Translations under genes and position numbers: made by a program
NCBI GenBank assembly: GCA_907165135.1
Contig: OU015568.1
Span: 930,001 to 994,000, forward strand
Length of the DNA: 64,000 bases
Source of the DNA: Oikopleura dioica
Taxonomy: Eukaryota; Animalia; Chordata
Direction: 5' to 3'
The notes under the pieces: generated by a model
What the model was told of the DNA's origin: nothing
Databases searched by the model: none
Seen by the model: the letters and a program-made list of their open reading frames with translations, nothing else
Part shown: in pieces, positions 2,330 through 40,026 of the stretch
Position numbering within the stretch: position 1 is the stretch's first letter
How the letters are laid out: each line of letters starts with the position of its first letter

Positions 2330-3857
2330 TTTGTCGTCATTTCGAGGTCTTGCTTTTTTATAAAATTATTTTCAGTAGTCTATCTTGATTTGTGTTTCGC
2401 GAAGAAGGATATACTCAGTTTCTTCGTGCTGCCGATGAATTCTAGCGAAAAATCTCTGCTGGAACGGGTTTTGATGGATTTGTTGATGTCGACTGTATAT
2501 CGGCATTTCTAGAGGAATTTTAGATAATAGAAATTGAAGTTGTTTTACCGGTGATTCCAGTGTATAAGTCAGCAAAGAAGCAGCAGACTTTCTTCCGCCA
2601 AAAATTCTTCTCAAACTTGTTCGTTGGCCAATACTGAGCTTCGAAGCTTCGCATGATCCATATCTTTCGAAGAGCACCAAGAATATCTCGAATTCCTTTT
2701 CCGTTAGATTCTCAGTCGCCGAGGACTCAAATCTACAATTTTCATTGCCAAAAATTCGTCAGAAATTATCTTACATAATCGGCCGCTTTGAGATTTCGGG
2801 ACATCTTTCTGTTCTGCTCGTTTCTCGCTTTTTTCTTGAACTAATTGTTTCTTTCATTTTTTCATGAATTTCAGTCGCTTAAATTTTCGTGATAAGGGAT
2901 CAAGAATTTTGGAATACCTAGTGTGGAATAAGCTTTTTTGACATTTTCAGGAAGAGATCTGAAGTTTTTGAAGTTCTCGAATTTTTCACGATGCTGGGAA
3001 AGAAGGCATAAATCGACATTGAAATGCAGTTTGATAATAGCTTCTTGAATATCTAAATCCTTCTTTGAAGACATAGAAGAGAGTAAGGCATATTACCAGG
3101 GTTGTAAGTTATTTCAAACGGCGAAGTCTTATTTTCCACAACCAGCCCGACGATTGAGAAGTCACTTTTGAGCTCCAATTCTTTCGGATTGATGTCGAGC
3201 GGAACTCCAGTAGCTCTCAATCCTGTTTCGCGAAAAGCTGTTTGGACATCGATCAGAAAACCGAAGCGGCAGATCGACTCCTTACACAACAGTTTTGATT
3301 GACCAGTCAAAATTGGGTTTTCTTTTGTGGTACAGTCCGCACTGTAAGCCTAGAAATCATGATAGAGGTTGATGAAGTGTGTGTGTCCTGGGCTGGAGAG
3401 CCCAATTGGCTTACGCTTAGGAGTTGTCTCATCCAATTCCAAATTTGTCTCGACCATTTCGTCCGATGCTCGATTATTCCGCAATAACCATGCCTTGATT
3501 GAGAAGGAGAAATATAGCAATCTGTCGCGTTTGCTCGTGAAGGAGTTATCTAGAATTTCGCAAAATGAACAGTTTTGACGAAAGAGGCAAGAACTGACCA
3601 TTTGAGCAAGTTGCTCTCTCAGCACTTGGAGATGAAAGGCGAGCTCTGGGAAAACGCTTATTTGCGAGCTTTGGATCGGAACTATAACTTTTCTTTGACT
3701 TTTTCGATTTGGCAAAATTGGGCCCACCTGGTATTGACGTGTCCAGATTTTCGTTGTAAACTCGATGGAGGACGATTTCCGCCGCGGACAACATCGCTTG
3801 CTTGAGAATTTCGGGATGGGTTAGGTTTCGAGTGACGCGGTCGAGGAGGTTTTTCAC
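2330..3857 (-). CDS. Multi-exon gene of unknown function (approximate limits)
   Basis: Successive overlapping minus-strand ORF pieces (3546-3857, 3350-3727, 3053-3310, 2871-3074) with coding-like composition. No family motif recognised. Confidence 0.4.
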
Positions 3858-4399
3858 GCGTTTGTACTCTTTTCTTAAAAGATTTTTTAGTTTTTATTAC
3901 ATATTCGATTCAGAAAATGTTTTTGAAGCCCATTTCAAATTTTGCATCGAAAAATAATGGGGTTCAAAGATGGGATGTGCAGGAAATTGCACAATGTGCG
4001 TCAAGCGTGAAAAAGTTTATATAATATAATTTATATTATATTATATAAACGAATAGTTTATATAACGAAAGGAATTTGCCACACTAGGTTTCGTCATTTA
4101 ATTTATTTGACAGAAAGTATAGTCAGTTCGTTAATTATGAATCAAAAGGCTGGTCAAAAGGGAAGTTCAGATTAACCTCAGAGAAAAAAATAGGTCTTTG
4201 CTTGAAAATGAGATTTTTGATTATCATCACCTTTTCCATAACAATTTCAAATGCTTTTGTGAAAAGGTAGAGACTTATTTTTGAATCTTTAAAAAGATTA
4301 AACTGTTAAGGTTCCCGAACTACGCGGATGCCGAAAACCTTCATCGATTTTTCTCTAAGACGAAATCGTAGCAATTGCTACAGAACCTTTCAGTAGAAG

Positions 4400-5957: not shown

Positions 5958-6429
5958 CCGACAAAATGGGGCTAAACGAATACTTTGAAGTGAGTTTTTG
6001 GATTACCAATAAGATTGCTTTATTAGGCCTACCGGCAAATCAAAACCCACAAAACCCAAAATGGGGACCCCAAATTTTTTTGGTCATTTTGACCCCAAAT
6101 TTTCAGGGCTCATTTTAGGTTATTCCGGCTCCTTGAAACTTGATGGGCAAGAATTGGCAGTGGCAAATTCAGTTTCTTTTGAAACCGCTTTTGATAGATC
6201 TTCATCGAAATTCTCCAAGTCGATATTCCAAGTCTCCAATTTCGGCTGCGCAAAGTTCGAATTGCAAATTTGAAAATTGAGACCTTCATTTTCCGAATTC
6301 TTTTTCTAAAAATAGCTGGTGATTTGGCAGATCTGGCAGCAGCGGATTAATAATCATAAATTTGCGAATATATTTTTAGAGCAGGCGCGAGCGAGAAGGC
6401 CATAAACATAATTATCAAAGTCAACAATC

Positions 6430-7281
6430 AAATCATAAAAATTATCTTCTTTCAACTTTGCGGCTTACCTGGGAAATGGACGTTATGTAGTTTGAGCAAT
6501 GCTCGGTCTCGCCAAAGGCGCGTTCGCAGCTGATTTTCGCGCTCACGTGACTTTGGTTCTCGAGGCCGGAGGTGGTGCCATCGGGGAAATAGGCTTTCAC
6601 GTGAGGGCGGAAGGGGATTTCGGCGATCGTGAAGTACTCCCTAAAAAACGGAGTTAGAAGAGGGATACCCTTAAATATTCGACAAGCGATCGTTCGAAAT
6701 TGTCGATAAAACGACGAGCTATGACAAAAATAGACAATGTCTAGCAGACAAGCCCAGAAGGAGCTCTTGATACTGTAAATTAACCAAATGAGATCAGGTT
6801 TTCTAAGAATTAAAAAAAAATCTCCTTTGAAAAGAGATCCGCTAAGCCAATTTTAAACTTGAACAAAAGCCTCTTCTTTTGTGGCCCTTTTATAAATGGG
6901 ATAATATTTCCTTTTGTGGAAGTATTTAGAAAAGTTACTTTTGGTACTCACTCATGGCCGGAAATCAGAAACTCTTTGTCCTTTCCGTCGACAAAGGCCC
7001 ACGAGAAGAACCGCGATTGCGTTGCCCCGCGGCTTGTGCAGAACACGTCTTTTTCGACGATAATTCGACGGTCATCTTAAAATTCATTTGCTTTGGGCCC
7101 TCTTTCATTTGCAATCAAGGACGACATCAGGGCATATACCGCCGTCTACCCCCTTAAAACAAGACCTACCTATAGGTCGCAAATGAACTTCATTTTTCTT
7201 CGCATGACCATAAGTTTTCGATCTTCCAGCTTGACAGTTCTCCAATAGCGTTAAAACAAAAAGCCACAGAATTTTTCGCAT
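6430..7281 (-). CDS. Small secreted protein, unknown function (3' limit approximate)
   Basis: ATG 7281 gives the signal-peptide-like MRKILWLFVLTLLENCQAG. Later exons read GVDGGICPDVVLDCK, DDRRIIVEKDVFCTSRGATQSRFFSWAFVDG and EYFTIAEIPFRPHVKAYFPDG. Confidence 0.5.
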
Positions 7282-31587: not shown

Positions 31588-33488
31588 ATGAAATTGAATA
31601 TTTTTCTTCCTGCTGTTGCTTTTGCTGGCTGGAAGGGACCTGAAGGTAAAAATTTGAAAAGAAAGGGGGTCGATGATTCTTTTGATAGAGCCAGATGTTG
31701 ATGATGAAGGATTGGGGACTTCGAAAATCGTTGAATCTTGGGCAGAGACAAAATGCGGCGCGTGCAAGGAAACCTTACGGCCGCTGAGAATTATGCTTCA
31801 TATTCTTCAGGAACCAGAAAAGGTATAAATAGGTCTGCATAACGCAAGAAAATTCCGGATACCCTCCTTTCGTCAGGAAGCCGTCGGATTTTCCTGACGA
31901 ATGGAGGATGTTCTAGAAACTCGTTTTTTTGATGATTTTCCCTTGATTTATCTTATTATTATTCTTTCTAAAAAAGGGTTAGGGTTGAGTAAATTCCCAA
32001 CTATATGTTCAAACGACTTATTTTTATCTAAAATTACTCTAAAAAACGAATAAGCCACAAAATTCGTAATTTTGATATTCAATCTCTTGTAGGTTAACAT
32101 GTTCTTGGAGGTTCTAGAAACTTTCATCCTCCATTCGCCAGGAAATTGGCGGATTTTCCTGACATATGGAGGATACAAGAATTTTCCTGACGAAAAGAGG
32201 GTCACCCGAAAATTCGACTTTTTATTCAATGCTTGTATAAAGCTCATTTTAACATATATTGGGCATAAAGTATAAATGACAGGACCGGTCCAAATTTTTC
32301 TGAATATTATATTTTTGGTACTTGAAGAACATATGTTCTTCAACGTATACGTTTATGCATATTTTATAAAGAAAATGAATTTCTCGAAAGATTTCACTAC
32401 AGTAACTTGCTCACGAAATAGATCAAGAGCAAAATATAAATGCAGCTATCTTTATCTCTATTTATGGTTTTTGAGAACTATATCTAGAATCGATTTGAGT
32501 TAATTTTTGAATTCAGGACGGAAATAAATGGGACGAGAAAAAGCGCGGGCCCTGGAAAACATCAGAAACTCGACTGATCCGAATCATGGAAGAACTCTGC
32601 AAACACGGCGGAAAAGCCGACAAAGCATGCGCCGCTCTTCTCGAAGCCAACGAAGAAGCCATCGAAAAATGGTATTACGATGGAAATGATCCAGCAACTT
32701 GGATCGATGAAATTTGCGTCAAAGCCGCCGGCCACTGTTGTCCTCGAGCGGATCAGCAGGGGCCGAATTGCGAGGAATGCCCAAAAGGAAAGAATGGAAA
32801 AGTCTGCTCGGGAAATGGGAGATGCGATGGAGGAGGAGATCGAGAAATAATCGGGCAGTGCAAGTGCAATAGAATCGATGATCAAGCATTCTACGAAGGG
32901 GAGACTTGTTCTGAGTGCCCCAGCGACGATTCTTCTCTCCGAACGTTTTCATATTTCTTGTCAAATGAGGAAAAACTTGACAGTGAAGAACCAATCTGTC
33001 TCAGATGCGATAAGGTTTGTCTTAAAATTCTCCAGTAACAAGGTTCATTCATTTAAATTTTAGGCCTGTAAAGACGGTTGCTCCGCAAAAGGTCCAGAAA
33101 ACTGCAACGAATGCAGAGAAGGCTATGCCTGGCAAATCGTTGCTTCTCCTGGAGGCATGAACATTTCTAGCGACGGAGTTCTTCAGGTATACTTTGTCTA
33201 CATTTTTAATTAATTCAAATGTCCCAAAAGGGTGCGAAGAGAGCCTGCGTTTCTTTGAGCAAACCAAGAACTGTCCTTGAACAAAAAGCTGCTGCAACTG
33301 GAACGCAGAAAATCTTCGACCCGAATATCGACATCAAAGTGGCTCAAGAAATGATCAAGGCGGAATACAAAGCCAAAGAGGTTCGTTTCTTTTTAATCTA
33401 CTGCGATTTTAGCGGTCTTTTAAGGAACGTCGTCGACAAGCAGAAGCAGAGAAACTCAATGTTAATTCCAAAGATGAGCTGTGAATAA
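31588..33488 (+). CDS. CRELD: Cysteine-rich with EGF-like domains protein (DUF3456 plus EGF)
   Basis: Signal peptide, CGAC, then WKTSETRLIRIMEELC, CAALLEANEEAIEKWY, CCP...GPNCEEC and CSGNGRCDGGGDRE..GQCKC...YEGETCSEC, following the CRELD pattern. Confidence 0.88.
31846..32216. mobile_element. Degenerate MITE-like inverted repeat in the CRELD intron
   Basis: 31846-31920 and 32110-32216 are diverged reverse complements built of CCTCC(T/A)TTCGTCAGGAA subunits. Confidence 0.55.
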
Positions 33489-33700: not shown

Positions 33701-36430
33701 TCATTGAATTATTTTGTGATATTTTTCCTGGAACTCAGCCGTCAACGGCACCTGAGTATCAAGATTTGTTGCTAAAATCTCATCAACACCGCAATTTTTG
33801 CCGGACAAATGTAGATAATTCCAAGTTCCTGTTTCGTAAAGCATTTTCGCATTTGTGTACGGATGTCCTGGATTCGTGCAAGCTCCGTTTCCATTTTCTT
33901 TTTATGAATAAAAAAATCACATAAGCTCAAGACAACAAAATTTTATTCTTTCCTATAATGTCGATATACTCACTTAATTTTAATTCGGGCGTAGTTACAA
34001 TCTGCGTTTTAGGAGGTTCTCTATTTATAACAAGCTTGTTTGCTGAGCAATCAATCACTCCTTTTGCACAAGAGGAGAAAATTTTTTTCGCCCTTTTGAT
34101 TTCGTCTTCCATTTTCTGAATTTTTCATTTCATTTCGCTTGGAAATATGAACAAAACCTTCTGTCCAAAAGCTTCTATTTTTCGATGTAAAGATGCATTA
34201 AAATAATTATACATAAGAATGTCGGCTTTATGAAAATCTTCGAATACTGCTTGCCTATTTGAATTTAATAATTCCTTTTTGTAGTGTCTTTCGTTTTTGT
34301 TTTCGAGATAGAGATGCTCGTATTCAGCGCAGAGTAAATGTCTGAGTAGAACAATGCCCTCCCAAAAATATTCCGTGATAAGAACCAGGTCAAATTGACT
34401 GTCCAATCTCGACAGACTCTCTTTTACATATGTGATGTCGTTTATTTTGTCGAAATCCATTCCAAGTTCAAACGACTGAGGGTTACTTTTTGATGGTTAA
34501 AAATATATCAACATTAATGAGACAAAATATTACAAAATAAATTTATCCGATTCCTTACTCGATACGCAAACGGAACCGAAGAATTGTATGCTTTTGGAAG
34601 AATATCGAGAAATTTTTCAATTGGCGGATATGGTCTCTTATTGTTATCTTTCACAAAGTCTGAGAGAAAGGTCTTGAATGGTGCGCCCCAGCATGGATAT
34701 TCACAGCCATTTGAGTTTTGATAAAAATAATTGTACGTTGACCGGAAAGTTGCAAGCGGATCACGAATTGTTGTGAAAATTTTGACTCTTTCTCGGTTTG
34801 AATCGAATATCGACGGCAAATAGTCCATATTCCAACGAAAATGATACGAGATCCCTTTATTTGGAATTATTCTGCAGGAAATTAGATAAAGCCCCTACCT
34901 AGGACAGGATCATGACGTTTGTTTCCTTCCCAACAGCGTTCGTCGAATTGAGCAGGAAAACAACCTCCTTGTGGTCCCATTTGGGGTTTTTCGATCTCAT
35001 TGAAAACCCTATTTATCTTCAACCATTTGTCGATGATGCCTTTGAATGTCGTTGATGCTGTTTTATGCTTTTTCAAAAATATAACGCCATTCTGACGATG
35101 ACATTTACTTTTCCATAAACTAAGATCAGCTGTTAGCGGAATTTTACTGAAAAAATTTTTCTTCGTTTCTCCTGTAACTTCATTCTCGGCTTTTTTTCTT
35201 AGATAATTTTGCTTCTCAAATAGCGGTAAACTGTTTCCTGCCAAGAGATCGTGAATTTCATTGATTAATTGATTTCCTTTTTCTATCATCGCGTTCGTAA
35301 AATATTCAAATGATGGCTGCTTCTTTGGTCGATGAAATTTTTCGGTTTGCTTTAAATTCTTTAAAAATTGATTTTAAAACTATAAAAACATATAAATATA
35401 CTTTTTCAAGACACTTAAGTCTTCGTTCGCGATCCGGGACGATATAATATTTTCGATCCTCGATAAAATCGAGAATTTTTGCCATTTCTTCTGTCGCGTT
35501 GATTTTTAAATTTTCGTAGAAAAAAATATGGACTGGAAGATCTTGCTCTTTCTTTTTAATAATTTGTAAAATGAGAGAACGCCACCGAGTCAACATGCTA
35601 GTTCCTTGTTTTTTCCAATCATTTGCCTTGAAGACGGATTCAGATACAGTCGAAGTATGGCTCTTTCCCTTTCTTCTTTTGAATTCAGCAACAGTTGCAT
35701 CAAATGGATTGCGGATCAAGAATAAGTAACCCTTTGCAGAGGAAAGACTTTTGTCTTCAGTAGTATGAGCCTTTTGAAAAAGAGTAGATCCATAAGTCGG
35801 ATTCGTCAACTCGCCAAGAAAGCCATTCTCGTAGAGTGATCTGTCGTTGTAAATGCTTCCAGTGAAGATTCCAGTTGATTTTTCAAGGAGCATTCGTGTC
35901 CAGCTAAAATTATGAACATAAAGAATTGATAGACAAAGTGCAGGCGAAGGGTGCAAGGATGCCTCAATCATAAAGGGTGAACCACCTGCGCGATCAACTG
36001 TATAAAATTATACATGTTTATTCCTGCAGGAAATAACACAAGATGTTAAATTTAGAATGAATTTTTTCAAAGCCCTAAATGGGCTTTTTGAAGGCCCATA
36101 AGTCTTATGTTATAAATACCTATAAATACCTTATAATAATAATGTTATGGTACTTACGTGTTACCGCTTCCAGGAAATGAAACAAGCGGGAAGATATCAA
36201 ACTCGTTTTCGCTACCAATTCTTGTTGCAAGCTCACACGTGTCTTCATTGACAGCTCGCATTTCACAATCAAGAATCATTTTTTTTCTCGATTAACATTT
36301 GTATATGTGGCTGGACAATATCATTATCTTTCTGCCAATCGACATTGTCGCGAAGAAAGATTAAGACAAAGCACGTGATAAAGGTAACAAAAATAAATTT
36401 AATTATTGCGTTCGTCGACATTTTTTCCAT
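33701..36430 (-). CDS. Fusion: TM anchor, WSCD-type sulfotransferase, galactose-3-O-sulfotransferase
   Basis: WSCD motifs SFPGSGNT|WTRMLLEKSTGIFTGSIY and LIRNPFDATVAEF. GAL3ST motifs VIFLKKHKTASTTF, IRDPLATFRSTYNYF, FDLVLITEYF and YFNASLHRKIEAFG. The junction lies within one ORF (34882-35289). A +1 shift occurs in a T8 run at 36279-36286. Confidence 0.82.
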
Positions 36431-37698
36431 GTTTTTTAAAGTTAACTTCTTTTTGAATATTTTTGAGTCCTTCGTTTCTCTCTCTCTCTTTTAAATTGTG
36501 GGAATAAACAGCCACGATCGTGAACTCATAATTTCATGTAAGGAGCAGCAATTTTATCTTCATATCTTTAACTTGAGTTAGTTTCTATTTATGCATTTTC
36601 TTGAAGAACGGTTAAATTCAAGAAAAAAAAAACAAAACTGATTTCGTTTTCCTAAGAAATTTGTCAGAATTTTTCTTGACATTGTGATTTATCGATGCAT
36701 AAAGTTTGATTTTCGCACTGCCATAGCAACAATAGAGAGATGAGGATTGAAAAAAACTTTTATGATTCGGCTCCTTTGTGGCAAATGCAAATGTTTTTTT
36801 TGTTTACTCATATTCTGCCAAAATGCGACGCTTATCCTGCCCACCTTTTGCCTCTCTTTTGGAAAGCGCAAATAAAACTGTTTGCATAAAACTGCCATTA
36901 AGTTGAAATAAATTAGAAAAAAATATTTTTTGAACACTGTTTTGAGTAACGAATTGAGTAATGGTGACGACGACAAACCGGAATTTAACACGCCGACGAC
37001 AATTGCTATATAAAGGCCATATAATATTGCACATGGACTTTAACGCCATCTATTGACCAATGCCCGAAGCCGATTCTTAACCCAAACCAACACACAGCCC
37101 AAAACCTTAAATCGAACATGAACCTACCATGGAGTTGAGCTCTAAGTGGAGATAGGAGAATCTGAGCGTCTTTGGCCCCGTAAGACGCTCGATCTGTGAG
37201 CGCGCCTAATTTTGGGAGAATCCGCGCCAACCCTTGTCGGCTCTCTCATTGGCTAGACCGGTTTAACTTTCGAGATTCTGTTCTTCCGAATCTCGAGATT
37301 CTTCTAAACCGACGAGCAAGCGTTAAAGAAACTTTCTAGACTTCCCCCGACAGTGATTTGCGCGGGACACGGGGAAAGGGGGCCAGGGGCTATCTCCCCA
37401 AAGAGTAAAACTTCATGGTAGTCTCAATCACAGACCATTGAAAAAAAACAGAAGTGAAAGAAGTAAAAAAATGGGTGTTTAAAAATTTTTGGGTCATATA
37501 TGGCTTATTTGTCGTCGTAAGGTTAATCTTTATTCGTTTTCTTCTTACAAAAAAGATAACGTCATCGACAACCAGAAGCAGATAGAATGAATTTTAATTC
37601 TAGAGATGAGCTTTAAATAGTGATCAAAAAAAGGCACTACAATCTTGAATGAGTATTTTTGTACGAACAGAATAGTGAAAACAAATCGTTATAAGAAA

Positions 37699-40026
37699 TT
37701 ATTCTTCGAGGGTTTTCGTTCTCAAATATCTTTTTTTCTCGAATTTTGGTAATTCGTTATCTTCAAAAAGATCGTAAACTTCATTGATTAATTGATTTCC
37801 TTTTTCAATCATCGCGTTTGAAAAATACTCAAATGATGGCGGCGCCTTTGGACGATGAAATTTCTCAGTTTCTTTTAAACTCTGAAATAAAAGTGACAAT
37901 GATAGATATGGGCTTATGAAAATGTACTTTTTCAAGGCACTGCAATCTTCTTTCTCGATCTGGAACGGCATAATATTTTTGGCTCTCGACGAAATCAAGA
38001 ATTTTCGCCATTTCTCGGGTCGCATTGATTTTTAAGTCTTCGTAGAAAAAGATGTGCATTGGGACCTTATTTTCTTTCTTTTTGCTGATGATTTTTAACA
38101 TAAGATTGTGCCACCAGCCCAAAAATTGTGTCCCCTGTTTAATCCAATCATCTTCTTTGAAAACCGACTCAGAAACACTTGAAGTGTGGCCTTTCCCCTT
38201 TCTTCTTTTGAATTCTGCGATGACTGCATCAAACGGATTGCGGATCAGAAATAAGTATCCTTTTGCGGAGGAAATATTTTTGTCGTCGATGTTGTGAGCT
38301 TTTTGAAAGAGAGTTGTCCCGTCTGTCGGGTCGGTATATTCGCCGAATAATCCGTCTTCGTAAAGTGACTTGTCGTTGTAAATACTTCCGGTATAGATGC
38401 CGGTAGATTTTTCAAGAAGCATTCGGGTCCAACTAAGAAGCTTTTTATTTGTCATTTGCGAGAAAACCTTACGTGTTTCCACTTCCAGCGAATGAAACAA
38501 GCGGGAAAACATCGAATTCGTCTTTCCTCCCAAGTCGTGTTCCGAGGTCACAATTGTCTTCATCTGGCATTTCGAAGTCGAGTATCATTTCTTCGCCAAA
38601 TTTATCCGCGGCTAGTCGTTCAAGGACAACATTCGCGCTCCAAGTCGATGGATTCGAATAAAAGAAGAAATCGGATGTGAACGCCAGCTCTTGAGAAAGA
38701 AGAGAGAGTTGTGTATCAAAATAAGCATCAGTTAGTCGAGATTTGGCAAAGTCTGATATTTCTTGTTCTTCGATAATTTCGGCTTCGGGGTAATATTCGA
38801 CAATATGGGAAGTGAGATTTTTCAAGAAATTATAGTCGGACGGGGGGCTATTTCGGGCTCAATCAGTTGATGATTTTTTATAAAAATAAATAAACATTTA
38901 TTGAAGCCTTTTGCCTGAAAAGTAAAATTGTCTTTCCATTTATTTTCTTCATTCTTTTGACAACCCATTTTACGAAAATGGATGGATCCGCTCGTATATT
39001 CTTAATTTTTGCAACGAGACTCTTCTTGCTTTCCCCAGAATTCAGCTGAATGAAATCGTTTAGATCATATCGCCAATGAAGAGTCGCAAAATGGGTGATA
39101 TTTTTTGAGCTAAGAAATTCTTTCGAAATTTCTTGAATCTTTTTCGATCTTCTAGTGTTTCTGATAATATCGAGGATCATGTCGATAAAGTCGAAATCGT
39201 ACAGTTTGCTCGCTCGAAGACGGTTCTTTGCCAGCTCATTCTGGAGAAAGTATTAACAAGCCTTCTAACACGACGGAAACCTCACCCAATCGATTATGCC
39301 AAATGGTTGTTTGAGCATAACACAGTCAATGTTATCAAATTTCAAAAACTGTTCGGAAATTTCTCGTTGAAAATCTTCTTTTGGCCCGATAAGATCAACC
39401 TTCTCGGTGTCGTTATACGTCGAAAAATCCAAGCCGAAGTAGTTGTAAGTATGCTGGATATATCTGGTGTCTTTCCAGTTTTGATGAGTGTTGAAAATCA
39501 AATCAAAGCGGTTCTCTTTCATGATTGCTTAACTTTTTTTCGTCGAATTATTTCGTAAAAAATTAGCGCAATCCTTTCCCAAACAGCTTTCATGAACATG
39601 AGAAGCGACAGAGATTGACGAGTTTATCAACGGAATATCGAATATTTCTGATGGAGGTAAACGAAATTCGCCCTTTGAAGAAAAGTGCCGGAAAAACGGT
39701 GGGACCCCGATCTTAATAAAATTATAAAACTTGTGCTTTTTCGAGTTTTCGTTCACCTTTCGATCAAGAATCTTTGCAATGATGAGACTTTCCCTAAAGC
39801 CTTGGTACTGATTGTTTGGCCCGTAAATCAAAACAGGAATAAGGATTTTCGTATTTTTCATTTCTCTCGCAAATAATCCGCTCTCTTCATGCTCCAGCAA
39901 AAATTTAATGTGTGGTTGGACAATGTCAGCCTCTTTCCTCTGATTTAAATCGTCTCCAAGGAAGTAGAAAAAGGACCAAGTAATGAATAAAACGAAAAAA
40001 AGTTGGTAAAATATATGAATTTCCAT
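37699..40026 (-). CDS. Fusion: TM anchor, O-fucosyltransferase (POFUT/PF10250-like), WSCD-type sulfotransferase
   Basis: O-FucT-like motifs GPNNQYQGFRESLIIAKILDR..VPPF, LHWRYDLNDF and SQELAFTSDFFFYSNPSTWSANVVLER. ORF 38469-38825 runs from these directly into FPLVSFAGSGNT; ORF 37865-38563 is the WSCD domain. Confidence 0.8.

Follow-up and report, generated by a model that had tools for sequence, protein, structure and literature searches.

NDST (N-deacetylase/N-sulfotransferase) and LARGE1 (two glycosyltransferase domains) are bifunctional glycan enzymes of the Golgi, and the fucosyltransferases POFUT1 and POFUT2 are soluble enzymes of the endoplasmic reticulum (ER). The Drosophila gene monkey-king, reportedly described by Wang et al. 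in 2004, is said to be the standard case of gene fission by duplication and complementary degeneration. Here, two neighboring fusion genes of the larvacean Oikopleura dioica (gene 1 and gene 2) were analyzed, which lie on the minus strand of a 64,000-nt stretch of contig OU015568.1 (positions 930,001 to 994,000, or C1:930001-994000 in our genome searches; this whole stretch is referred to as the window). Both encode an anchor and a WSCD-type sulfotransferase domain; gene 1 continues into a GAL3ST domain, while gene 2 carries a fucosyltransferase-like (FucT-like) domain between anchor and sulfotransferase. We conclude that the two genes are probably ancient tandem paralogs of a three-domain fusion gene, each of which has lost a different end domain. 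Regarding the domain common to both, WSCD1 and WSCD2 are the vertebrate sialate:O-sulfotransferases 1 and 2 (PMC9304399).

Like WSCD1 and WSCD2, the Oikopleura proteins have a type II topology, belong to the same sulfotransferase subfamily (32% identity, E values of 1e-25 to 1e-27, over the catalytic domain) and carry the PGSGNT P-loop and the RNPxDAxxAE motif; unlike them, they have no WSC domains and are fused N-terminally to a FucT-like domain and/or C-terminally to GAL3ST. The C-terminal domain of gene 1 resembles GAL3ST1-4 in matching PF06990 above the cutoff and in its KTASTTF and RDP..FRS motifs, but it has no anchor of its own, stands behind another sulfotransferase and belongs to a family that is expanded in this genome. 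The FucT-like domain is similar to POFUT1/POFUT2 (GT65/GT68) and FUT8 (GT23) in the predicted fold of its C-terminal half (modeled on the paralogous locus L031), in its HxRxxD-like HWRYD motif and in S(T/S)WS..ER, whereas, in contrast to POFUT1/2, it is subthreshold in Pfam, membrane-anchored and fused to sulfotransferases. By analogy with NDST and LARGE1, consecutive catalytic domains on one anchored polypeptide may act on the same glycan, but here a glycosyltransferase-like domain shares its polypeptide with one or two sulfotransferases from different families, a combination of which our literature searches retrieved no description. As in fission of the monkey-king type, a multidomain gene appears to have been duplicated and its copies to have lost different parts; the present case differs in being partial, since both copies keep the anchor and the WSCD-type domain, and in that the unsplit three-domain form persists as a paralog. 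The individual domain families, tandem-domain Golgi enzymes and the concept of duplication-degeneration fission are known, and what is new here is a gene with all three domains, a survey of architectures across the family and the evidence for complementary loss in a tandem pair.

Architecture of the two fusion genes

The genome searched comprised 64.28 Mb in 19 pieces, the longest of 17,092,476 bp. The Okinawa assembly of O. dioica, OKI2018_I69, was built from Nanopore reads and polished with Illumina reads, with a median intron length of 49 bp and 11% non-canonical introns (PMC8008620). Pfam and database searches were run exon by exon, and the joined spliced models were used only for frames, pairwise identities and dN/dS. 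The exon borders of gene 1 were guided by the intron-poor open reading frame (ORF) 6152-7168 of L031, and the intron positions of gene 2 were inferred from the uninterrupted ORFs of the paralogs L031 and L033. The resulting models (Table 1) contain, in gene 2, introns of 40 to 67 nt, four of them GT-AG, one GA-AG (39573-39514) and one GC-AG (38914-38848), and, in gene 1, GA-AG introns inferred at 34553-34486 and at 33952-33898, the latter, which is the last of the gene, being the least certain.

A sequence-only reading of the window had claimed that the two genes share an anchor/stem and a segment before the WSCD core. All peptides quoted for this claim were found on the minus strand, namely DIVQPHIQMLIEKK (stem) and MILDCEM..SFPGSGNT in gene 1, whose start is at 36430 and whose anchor is similar to that of gene 2, and DIVQPHIKFLLEHEE (stem) and MILDFEM..SFAGSGNT in gene 2. 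At the nucleotide level, blastn aligned 36284-36153 of gene 1 to 38593-38468 of gene 2 (76%) and 35907-35188 to 38436-37711 (75%). The segment before the WSCD core is a composite: MILDxEM and the acidic stretch correspond to the C-terminal tail of the FucT-like domain, and what follows, from ..(D/E)NC..RLG..EF on, belongs to the WSCD-type domain as its N-terminus, which occurs in WSCD-only paralogs as well.

The same reading held that the two shared segments are directly adjacent in gene 1. This is correct for their position, while their frames do not join as assembled, owing to an A8 homopolymer between the anchor/stem and MILDCEM. When DNA contigs of two independent studies (X1 and X4) were aligned to the region, the base at 36279 was missing in the entire contig depth (165.6 of 165.6 in X1 and 151.8 of 151.8 in X4), and the true length of the homopolymer at 36279-36286 is most likely A7. 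With A7, as read by both studies, gene 1 runs in frame through ...IEKK|MILDCEM and encodes an open protein of 740 amino acids (aa). Thus, a 1-nt homopolymer error in a Nanopore-based assembly can make an intact gene look frameshifted. A frame break of the same kind as this verified A8/A7 assembly error is also present at an A6 run of L031.

The WSCD-type domains of both genes matched PF00685 (33.7 bits in gene 2 and 31.1 bits in gene 1, with a cutoff of 22 bits). In BLASTP searches, that of gene 2 was 32% identical to a WSC-domain protein of the tunicate Clavelina (E, 4e-27) and that of gene 1 was 32% identical to a sialate:O-sulfotransferase 2-like protein (E, 3e-25), and the best named matches of the family are sialate:O-sulfotransferase-like proteins. 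Direct reading of both genes found the motifs that bind 3'-phosphoadenosine 5'-phosphosulfate (PAPS), SF(P/A)GSGNTW and LIRNPFDA(T/V)(V/I)AEFKRR. No exon of either gene matched the WSC domain (PF01822), and because WSC domains are missing N-terminal of the sulfotransferase, the domains are termed WSCD-type relatives rather than WSCD orthologs.

Between the two shared segments of gene 2, where the sequence-only reading had placed a whole O-FucT domain, ∼1.3 kb (∼39891-38589, five exons) indeed encode an additional, putatively POFUT-like domain, but this label derives from L031, since the FucT exons of gene 2 gave no match to PF10250 in the exon-wise search. Its counterpart in L031 (3457-4260), to which it is 42 to 47% identical, gave a PF10250 match of 23.5 bits (E, 5e-5) that covered profile positions 158-325, the correct C-terminal half, and fell short of the 31.5-bit cutoff. 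The AlphaFold model of this piece had a predicted local distance difference test (pLDDT) score of 73.5 (core, >90), and its top Foldseek matches were POFUT2, POFUT1 and FUT8 (E from 6.6e-5; prob 1.0; template modeling [TM] score of ∼0.4, for half a domain). It is on the basis of this homologous half, with its subthreshold profile match and its predicted POFUT2/POFUT1/FUT8 fold, that the gene 2 domain is called POFUT-like. Among the 15 aligned FucT pieces, three matched PF10250; a profile of the FucT alignment retrieved nothing useful from the Protein Data Bank (PDB) sequences, and single-sequence phmmer gave only a weak POFUT2 match (E, 0.19). The FucT motifs (YGPNNQ, HWRYD and STWS..ER) and the PAPS motifs of both sulfotransferase types were intact by direct reading.

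That only gene 1 has a C-terminal GAL3ST domain was borne out: its exon 34125-34460 matched PF06990 at 52.5 bits (cutoff, 27 bits; 100.4 bits for L031 ORF 6152-7165), while the exons of gene 2 gave no PF06990 match and no GAL3ST remnant was found downstream of gene 2. The segment FHRPK..MIEKGNQ.. of gene 2 was considered as a candidate GAL3ST remnant and rejected, as WSCD-only paralogs also have it and it represents the C-terminus of the WSCD-type domain. Moreover, the junction between the WSCD-type and GAL3ST domains of gene 1 lies within exon 35358-34899, and a single exon of gene 2 (38847-38473) spans ...STWSANVVLERLAADKFGEE, MILDFEMPDEDNC and the P-loop SFAGSGNT. Since every domain junction lies within one exon, the fusions cannot be dissolved by remodeling the genes, an outcome that would have spoken against the fusions proposed from the sequence.

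Family architectures, trees and selection

Each module was searched against the whole genome, and all modules were then mapped on 20 loci. WSCD-type sulfotransferase domains occur at at least 20 loci genome-wide, and the GAL3ST family is greatly expanded. A three-domain version was sought among the WSCD genes and found at L031, where ORF 2596-3087 encodes the anchor and the N-terminus of the FucT-like domain, ORF 3457-4263 its C-terminal half and the WSCD P-loop, and ORF 6152-7168 the WSCD C-terminus and GAL3ST. This three-domain paralog is apparently live. In addition, contig P0001 of an independent Logan assembly contains WSCD and GAL3ST domains within one ORF. The remaining architectures (Table 1) include a GAL3ST gene on C5 (10993278-10994468, minus strand) that is 67 to 74% identical to that of gene 1, as close as L031's, with no WSCD or FucT exons detected alongside; it could be another product of fission or represent a donor type. 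All genes without GAL3ST, whether WSCD-only or FucT-WSCD, terminate at most a few residues past ..Y(L/F)(K/R).., near the stop of gene 2.

Outside this genome, a metagenome contig of the Joint Genome Institute (P0031; 1,021 nt) carries a FucT-like module 56 to 58% identical to that of L031, and the same ORF continues into a beta4GalT N-terminal domain (PF13733; E, 1.4e-17), showing that the FucT-like module has at least one other fusion partner. The best match of the GalT part of P0031 in the O. dioica genome is at C2:7584703-7585050. A metagenome scan with a single protein for junction-bearing relatives found none.

In the phylogeny of the WSCD-type domains (260 columns, LG+G4), gene 1, gene 2 and the C4 paralog L033 formed one clade (support, 100/99), which was joined by L031 and L035 with weaker support (88/89), the WSCD-only locus L034 being next out (98/92). 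Topologies were compared by the approximately unbiased (AU) test. Within the trio, all three pairings, (gene 1, gene 2), (gene 2, L033) and (gene 1, L033), passed; the two WSCD cores, supposed to be sister paralogs, share a clade with the C4 paralog and may or may not be strict sisters. By contrast, a WSCD clade of gene 1 and L031 was rejected (p-AU, 1e-6), and GAL3ST is therefore found in both branches that arise from the deepest split within the five-gene clade. Identities of the WSCD-type domains were 73% (gene 1 and gene 2), 72% (gene 2 and L033), 68% (gene 1 and L033) and 67% (L031 and L035), and 56 to 61% between the two groups.

Of the five genes of this clade, four have the FucT-like domain, and its tree grouped gene 2 with L033 (100/99) and L031 with L035 (85/85). 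This topology mirrors the WSCD tree, indicating that the FucT-like and WSCD-type domains were inherited together. The FucT-like domain of gene 2 is 66 to 73% identical to that of L033 and 27 to 49% identical to that of L031. The relationships of the GAL3ST domains were assessed from pairwise and search-table identities: those of gene 1 and L031 are 75.2% identical over 274 aa with zero indels, and both are 50% identical to that of L032. The linkers of gene 1 and L031 are homologous as well (..FEKQNYL, 16 to 19 aa, then IPL.ADL.LW..C), with the same WSCD/GAL3ST junction.

In gene 2, L033, L031 and L035, the last FucT helix is followed by a FucT-tail motif, (N/M)(I/L)(L/x)DFx(I/M)..E(D/E)(N/D). 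This motif recurs in the FucT-like gene L040, for which no WSCD domain was detected, as well as in the metagenomic P0030 and P0031 (FucT-beta4GalT). WSCD-only paralogs have no ILDxEM, while the MILDCEM of gene 1 agrees with gene 2 and L033 at six of seven positions.

The ratio of nonsynonymous to synonymous change (omega) was 0.11 for the WSCD-type domains of genes 1 and 2, 0.04 to 0.13 for the FucT and WSCD pieces of gene 2 and L033, and 0.075 for the GAL3ST domains of gene 1 and L031. Synonymous sites are near saturation, with synonymous divergence (pS) of 0.64 for gene 1 and gene 2, slightly lower than the 0.71 between gene 2 and L033, and values of 0.68 to 0.75 across the comparisons of gene 2 with L033 and of gene 1 with L031. 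Purifying selection thus acts on all domains, and both genes are old and maintained rather than decaying.

Table 1. Features of the two fusion genes and their surroundings (positions in the window) and family architectures (positions in the genome)
Feature	Position	Strand	Description
Gene 1	33701..36430	-	Anchor, WSCD-type sulfotransferase and GAL3ST; seven exons, 740 aa with the A7 correction
Gene 1 exons	36430-36158, 35903-35402, 35358-34899, 34854-34554, 34485-34158, 34115-33953, 33897-33701 (including stop)	-	
A8 homopolymer as assembled	36279..36286	-	Shifts the frame between the gene 1 anchor/stem and MILDCEM
FucT-tail remnant MILDCEMRAVNED	36240..36278	-	Directly after the gene 1 stem; from alignment with FucT-bearing genes
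Gene 1 WSCD-type sulfotransferase	35200..36239	-	SFPGSGNT, LIRNPFDATVAEF, ..FHRPKKQPSFEYF..MIEKGNQ..FEKQNYL
Gene 1 linker (35199-35143) and GAL3ST	33704..35199	-	FLKKHKTASTTF, TIRDPLATFRS; PF06990 matches
Gene 2	37699..40026	-	Anchor, POFUT-like domain and WSCD-type sulfotransferase; seven exons, 674 aa, stop-free frame
Gene 2 exons	40026-39757, 39711-39574, 39513-39286, 39240-38915, 38847-38473, 38432-37928, 37881-37699 (including stop)	-	
Gene 2 signal-anchor and stem	39892..40026	-	Hydrophobic YQLFFVLFITWSFFYFL, stem ending DIVQPHIKFLLE, from translation; shares its exon with the FucT-like start
Gene 2 putative POFUT-like (GT-B fucosyltransferase-like) domain	38553..39891	-	Motifs YGPNNQ..GFRE, LHWRYD, STWSANVVLER; tail MILDFEMPDEDN
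Gene 2 WSCD-type sulfotransferase	37702..38552	-	P-loop SFAGSGNT, LIRNPFDAVIAEF; C-terminal end ...KRYLRTKTLEE*, then no GAL3ST
62-nt copy of the neighbor's last-exon end	37558..37619		82% identity, E 4e-12, to 33426-33487 (+)
Polymorphic high-copy repeat insertion	37045..37441		Spacer between the genes; depth 3,600 to 7,700 versus ∼165 elsewhere
FucT-WSCD-GAL3ST (one locus)	L031 (C1:335001-345000), C1:337,596-342,641		
FucT-WSCD (three loci)	Gene 2; L033 (C4:3.029-3.031 Mb); L035 (C1:5.120-5.125 Mb)		
WSCD-GAL3ST (two loci)	Gene 1; L032 (C1:13.485-13.487 Mb)		L032, intronless 672-aa ORF
Anchor-WSCD only	L034, L036, L037 and more distant loci		
FucT-like, no WSCD or GAL3ST detected alongside (at least three loci)	L039, L040, L041		
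GAL3ST	Many loci		109 exon matches to PF06990

Origin of the tandem pair

Two origins had been suggested for the pair from its sequence, a three-domain ancestor with reciprocal losses and a cassette-like shuffling of domains. The first is favored by the extant L031, by the congruent domain trees, by the WSCD-GAL3ST junction common to gene 1 and L031 and by the FucT tail in gene 1, and it has gained from the analysis through the 100/99 clade of the WSCD-type domains and the 75% identity of the GAL3ST domains with their homologous linker. The ancestor would have been a single type II (Golgi-type) membrane protein with a lumenal POFUT-like domain, WSCD-type sulfotransferase and GAL3ST in a row. 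After its duplication, an in-frame internal deletion of ∼1.3 kb may have removed the catalytic part of the FucT-like domain from gene 1 and left its last ∼7 to 13 residues between stem and WSCD-type domain, while gene 2 would have lost everything after the WSCD-type domain, its stop now standing five residues into the old linker. Both copies would have kept the anchor and the WSCD-type domain, so that one triple enzyme may have been replaced at this locus by a FucT-plus-sulfotransferase enzyme and a double sulfotransferase, in what may be called a partial "duplication-degeneration" fission. An internal in-frame deletion (∼39891-38589 in gene 2 coordinates) is suggested because gene 1 keeps the FucT tail without the FucT body; no other FucT remnants were found in the 5' exon and intron of gene 1. 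Short GA-rich stretches at both edges of the FucT region of gene 2 are compatible with a deletion between micro-repeats but are no proof of it. That the direction of change was loss rather than gain would follow from parsimony, not from dated orthologs.

Several observations weigh against this reconstruction. The loss-only scenario requires two to three independent GAL3ST losses in the five-gene clade, and this clade itself received support of only 88/89, while the FucT tree does not resolve the two fused clades as sisters (61). The common stop position of the genes without GAL3ST fits an ancestral stop to which GAL3ST was added later, although it fits independent truncations in a dispensable linker too. 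The GAL3ST domains of gene 1 and L031 (75% identity, versus 57% for their WSCD-type domains) are somewhat closer than predicted by simple scaling from the distant WSCD-GAL3ST gene (50% versus 40%), so that a later exchange may have occurred. In the assembly, the frame of L031 is broken by 1 nt within an A6 run (6117-6122; C1:341117-341122) inside ..FHRPKK|EPSFEYF... The four non-canonical introns (GA-AG and GC-AG) of the two models are predicted from the coding continuity of the paralogs, and two bulk RNA runs yielded only 6 to 11 partial reads of 90 to 95% identity, none usable. Finally, a 62-nt copy in the 3' flank of gene 2, similar to the 3' flank of gene 1, is better preserved than a neutral relic of the age of the pair (pS, 0.64) should be. 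Nevertheless, parsimony and the common junction favor loss of GAL3ST over later readthrough of an ancestral stop.

The cassette-like shuffling describes the wider family well, where FucT-WSCD-GAL3ST, FucT-WSCD, WSCD-GAL3ST, WSCD, FucT-like and GAL3ST genes and a metagenomic FucT-beta4GalT gene occur, but it does not explain the differences within this pair, for which we consider it rather unlikely. Under such an origin, a two-domain ancestor (anchor-WSCD-GAL3ST, as in the intronless L032, or FucT-WSCD) would have received the differing modules by ectopic recombination or gene conversion, for instance by copying of GAL3ST into gene 1 from the gene at C1:0.34M (620 kb away on the same chromosome) or by insertion of the FucT-like domain into the lineage of gene 2. 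All these module combinations, the P0031 fusion, in which a member of this FucT clade is joined to the N-terminal domain of a beta4GalT, the relative closeness of the gene 1 and L031 GAL3STs compared with their WSCD cores, the equally close C5:10.99M GAL3ST gene (67 to 74%) with no WSCD part detected, and the well-kept 62-nt flank copy, which hints at a later rearrangement or conversion at the 3' end of gene 2, would fit such exchanges. However, the FucT and WSCD trees are congruent for (gene 2, L033) and (L031, L035), the FucT tail was kept in gene 1, and the WSCD-GAL3ST junction and linker of gene 1 and L031 are homologous; an identity of only 27 to 49% between the FucT-like domains of gene 2 and L031 argues against a recent transfer, and the saturation of synonymous sites throughout leaves the coding sequence without a visible recent conversion tract.

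It is highly improbable that either gene, or the pair, represents pseudogenes in decay or artifacts of gene modeling whose architectures are mere leftovers: gene 1 is frameshifted as assembled, the FucT region of gene 2 contains an in-frame stop unless its GA-AG intron is spliced out, 4 of the 12 inferred introns are non-canonical versus ∼11% genome-wide (PMC8008620), and no usable RNA reads were recovered, but neither DNA study has the frameshift in its contigs, the two models are open throughout (740 and 674 aa), the non-canonical introns lie exactly where paralogs have continuous coding sequence, omega is ∼0.1, 19 of the 25 listed population variants between gene 2 and other contigs are synonymous in the model frame, including across the FucT exons, and the PAPS-binding and FucT motifs can be read intact.

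With a three-domain ancestor and complementary losses as the preferred origin, one small genome holds an unsplit three-domain gene, adjacent and complementary two-domain derivatives of it, and single-domain relatives, and would thus provide a natural example of the disassembly of a multi-enzyme after duplication.

Possible function and flanking sequences

The proteins are probably Golgi enzymes of type II topology, each with lumenal catalytic domains that act successively on one glycan. The product of gene 2 would add a fucose-like sugar and then a sulfate, that of gene 1 two different sulfates, and the three-domain paralog would perform all three steps; in this sense the proteins may act as a "glycan assembly line." The coupling of a glycosyltransferase-like domain with sulfotransferases suggests substrate channeling in the synthesis of sulfated glycans. 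The Golgi location, the substrates and any role in house building are inferred. More specifically, the family could be a larvacean-specific, modular Golgi assembly-line set that makes the sulfated fucose- or galactose-containing glycans of the house or its oikosins, with domain gain and loss setting the sugar and the sulfation positions, an idea that we put forward as distinctly speculative and unlikely to hold. If it were true, these proteins would count among the earliest animal candidates for the synthesis of sulfated polymers of the fucan or galactan type, and they would offer a natural series of one-, two- and three-enzyme proteins for comparison. A single-cell preprint of 2026 lists WSCD1-like and other sulfation genes among the top-expressed genes of specific house-secreting cell fields (10.64898/2026.03.31.715263). 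This expression fits a role of the family in house glycans, does not identify genes 1 and 2, and makes the family a reasonable target for studies of house chemistry.

Regarding the flanks, no homology was found between those of the tandem pair and those of the C4 paralog. Downstream of gene 1 lies a convergent neighbor (32586-33488, plus strand), a cysteine-rich, EGF-like (CRELD-like) gene whose last exon ends ...AEAEKLNVNSKDEL, an ER-retention signal. The end of this exon (...NSKDEL in the original) is matched by the 62-nt copy, which lies 80 nt past the stop of gene 2 and indicates that the 3' flank of gene 2 once resembled that of gene 1. The copy was considered as proof of a deletion in gene 2 and was downgraded, being too conserved for its supposed age; it would be either constrained or younger, in which case it perhaps stems from a subsequent rearrangement, possibly the one that removed GAL3ST. 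As an RNA element, it gave no Rfam match and no fold signal, and it is not multicopy in the genome.

The RNA reads at gene 2 (37988-38218 and 39828) run into unrelated sequence, and their joint 38012->38196 has no intron-like ends; these reads probably come from a diverged lineage or a paralog. The spacer between the two genes contains a polymorphic high-copy repeat insertion (Table 1), whose empty site (joint 37044->37442, with CATTG between) is present in contigs of both DNA studies.

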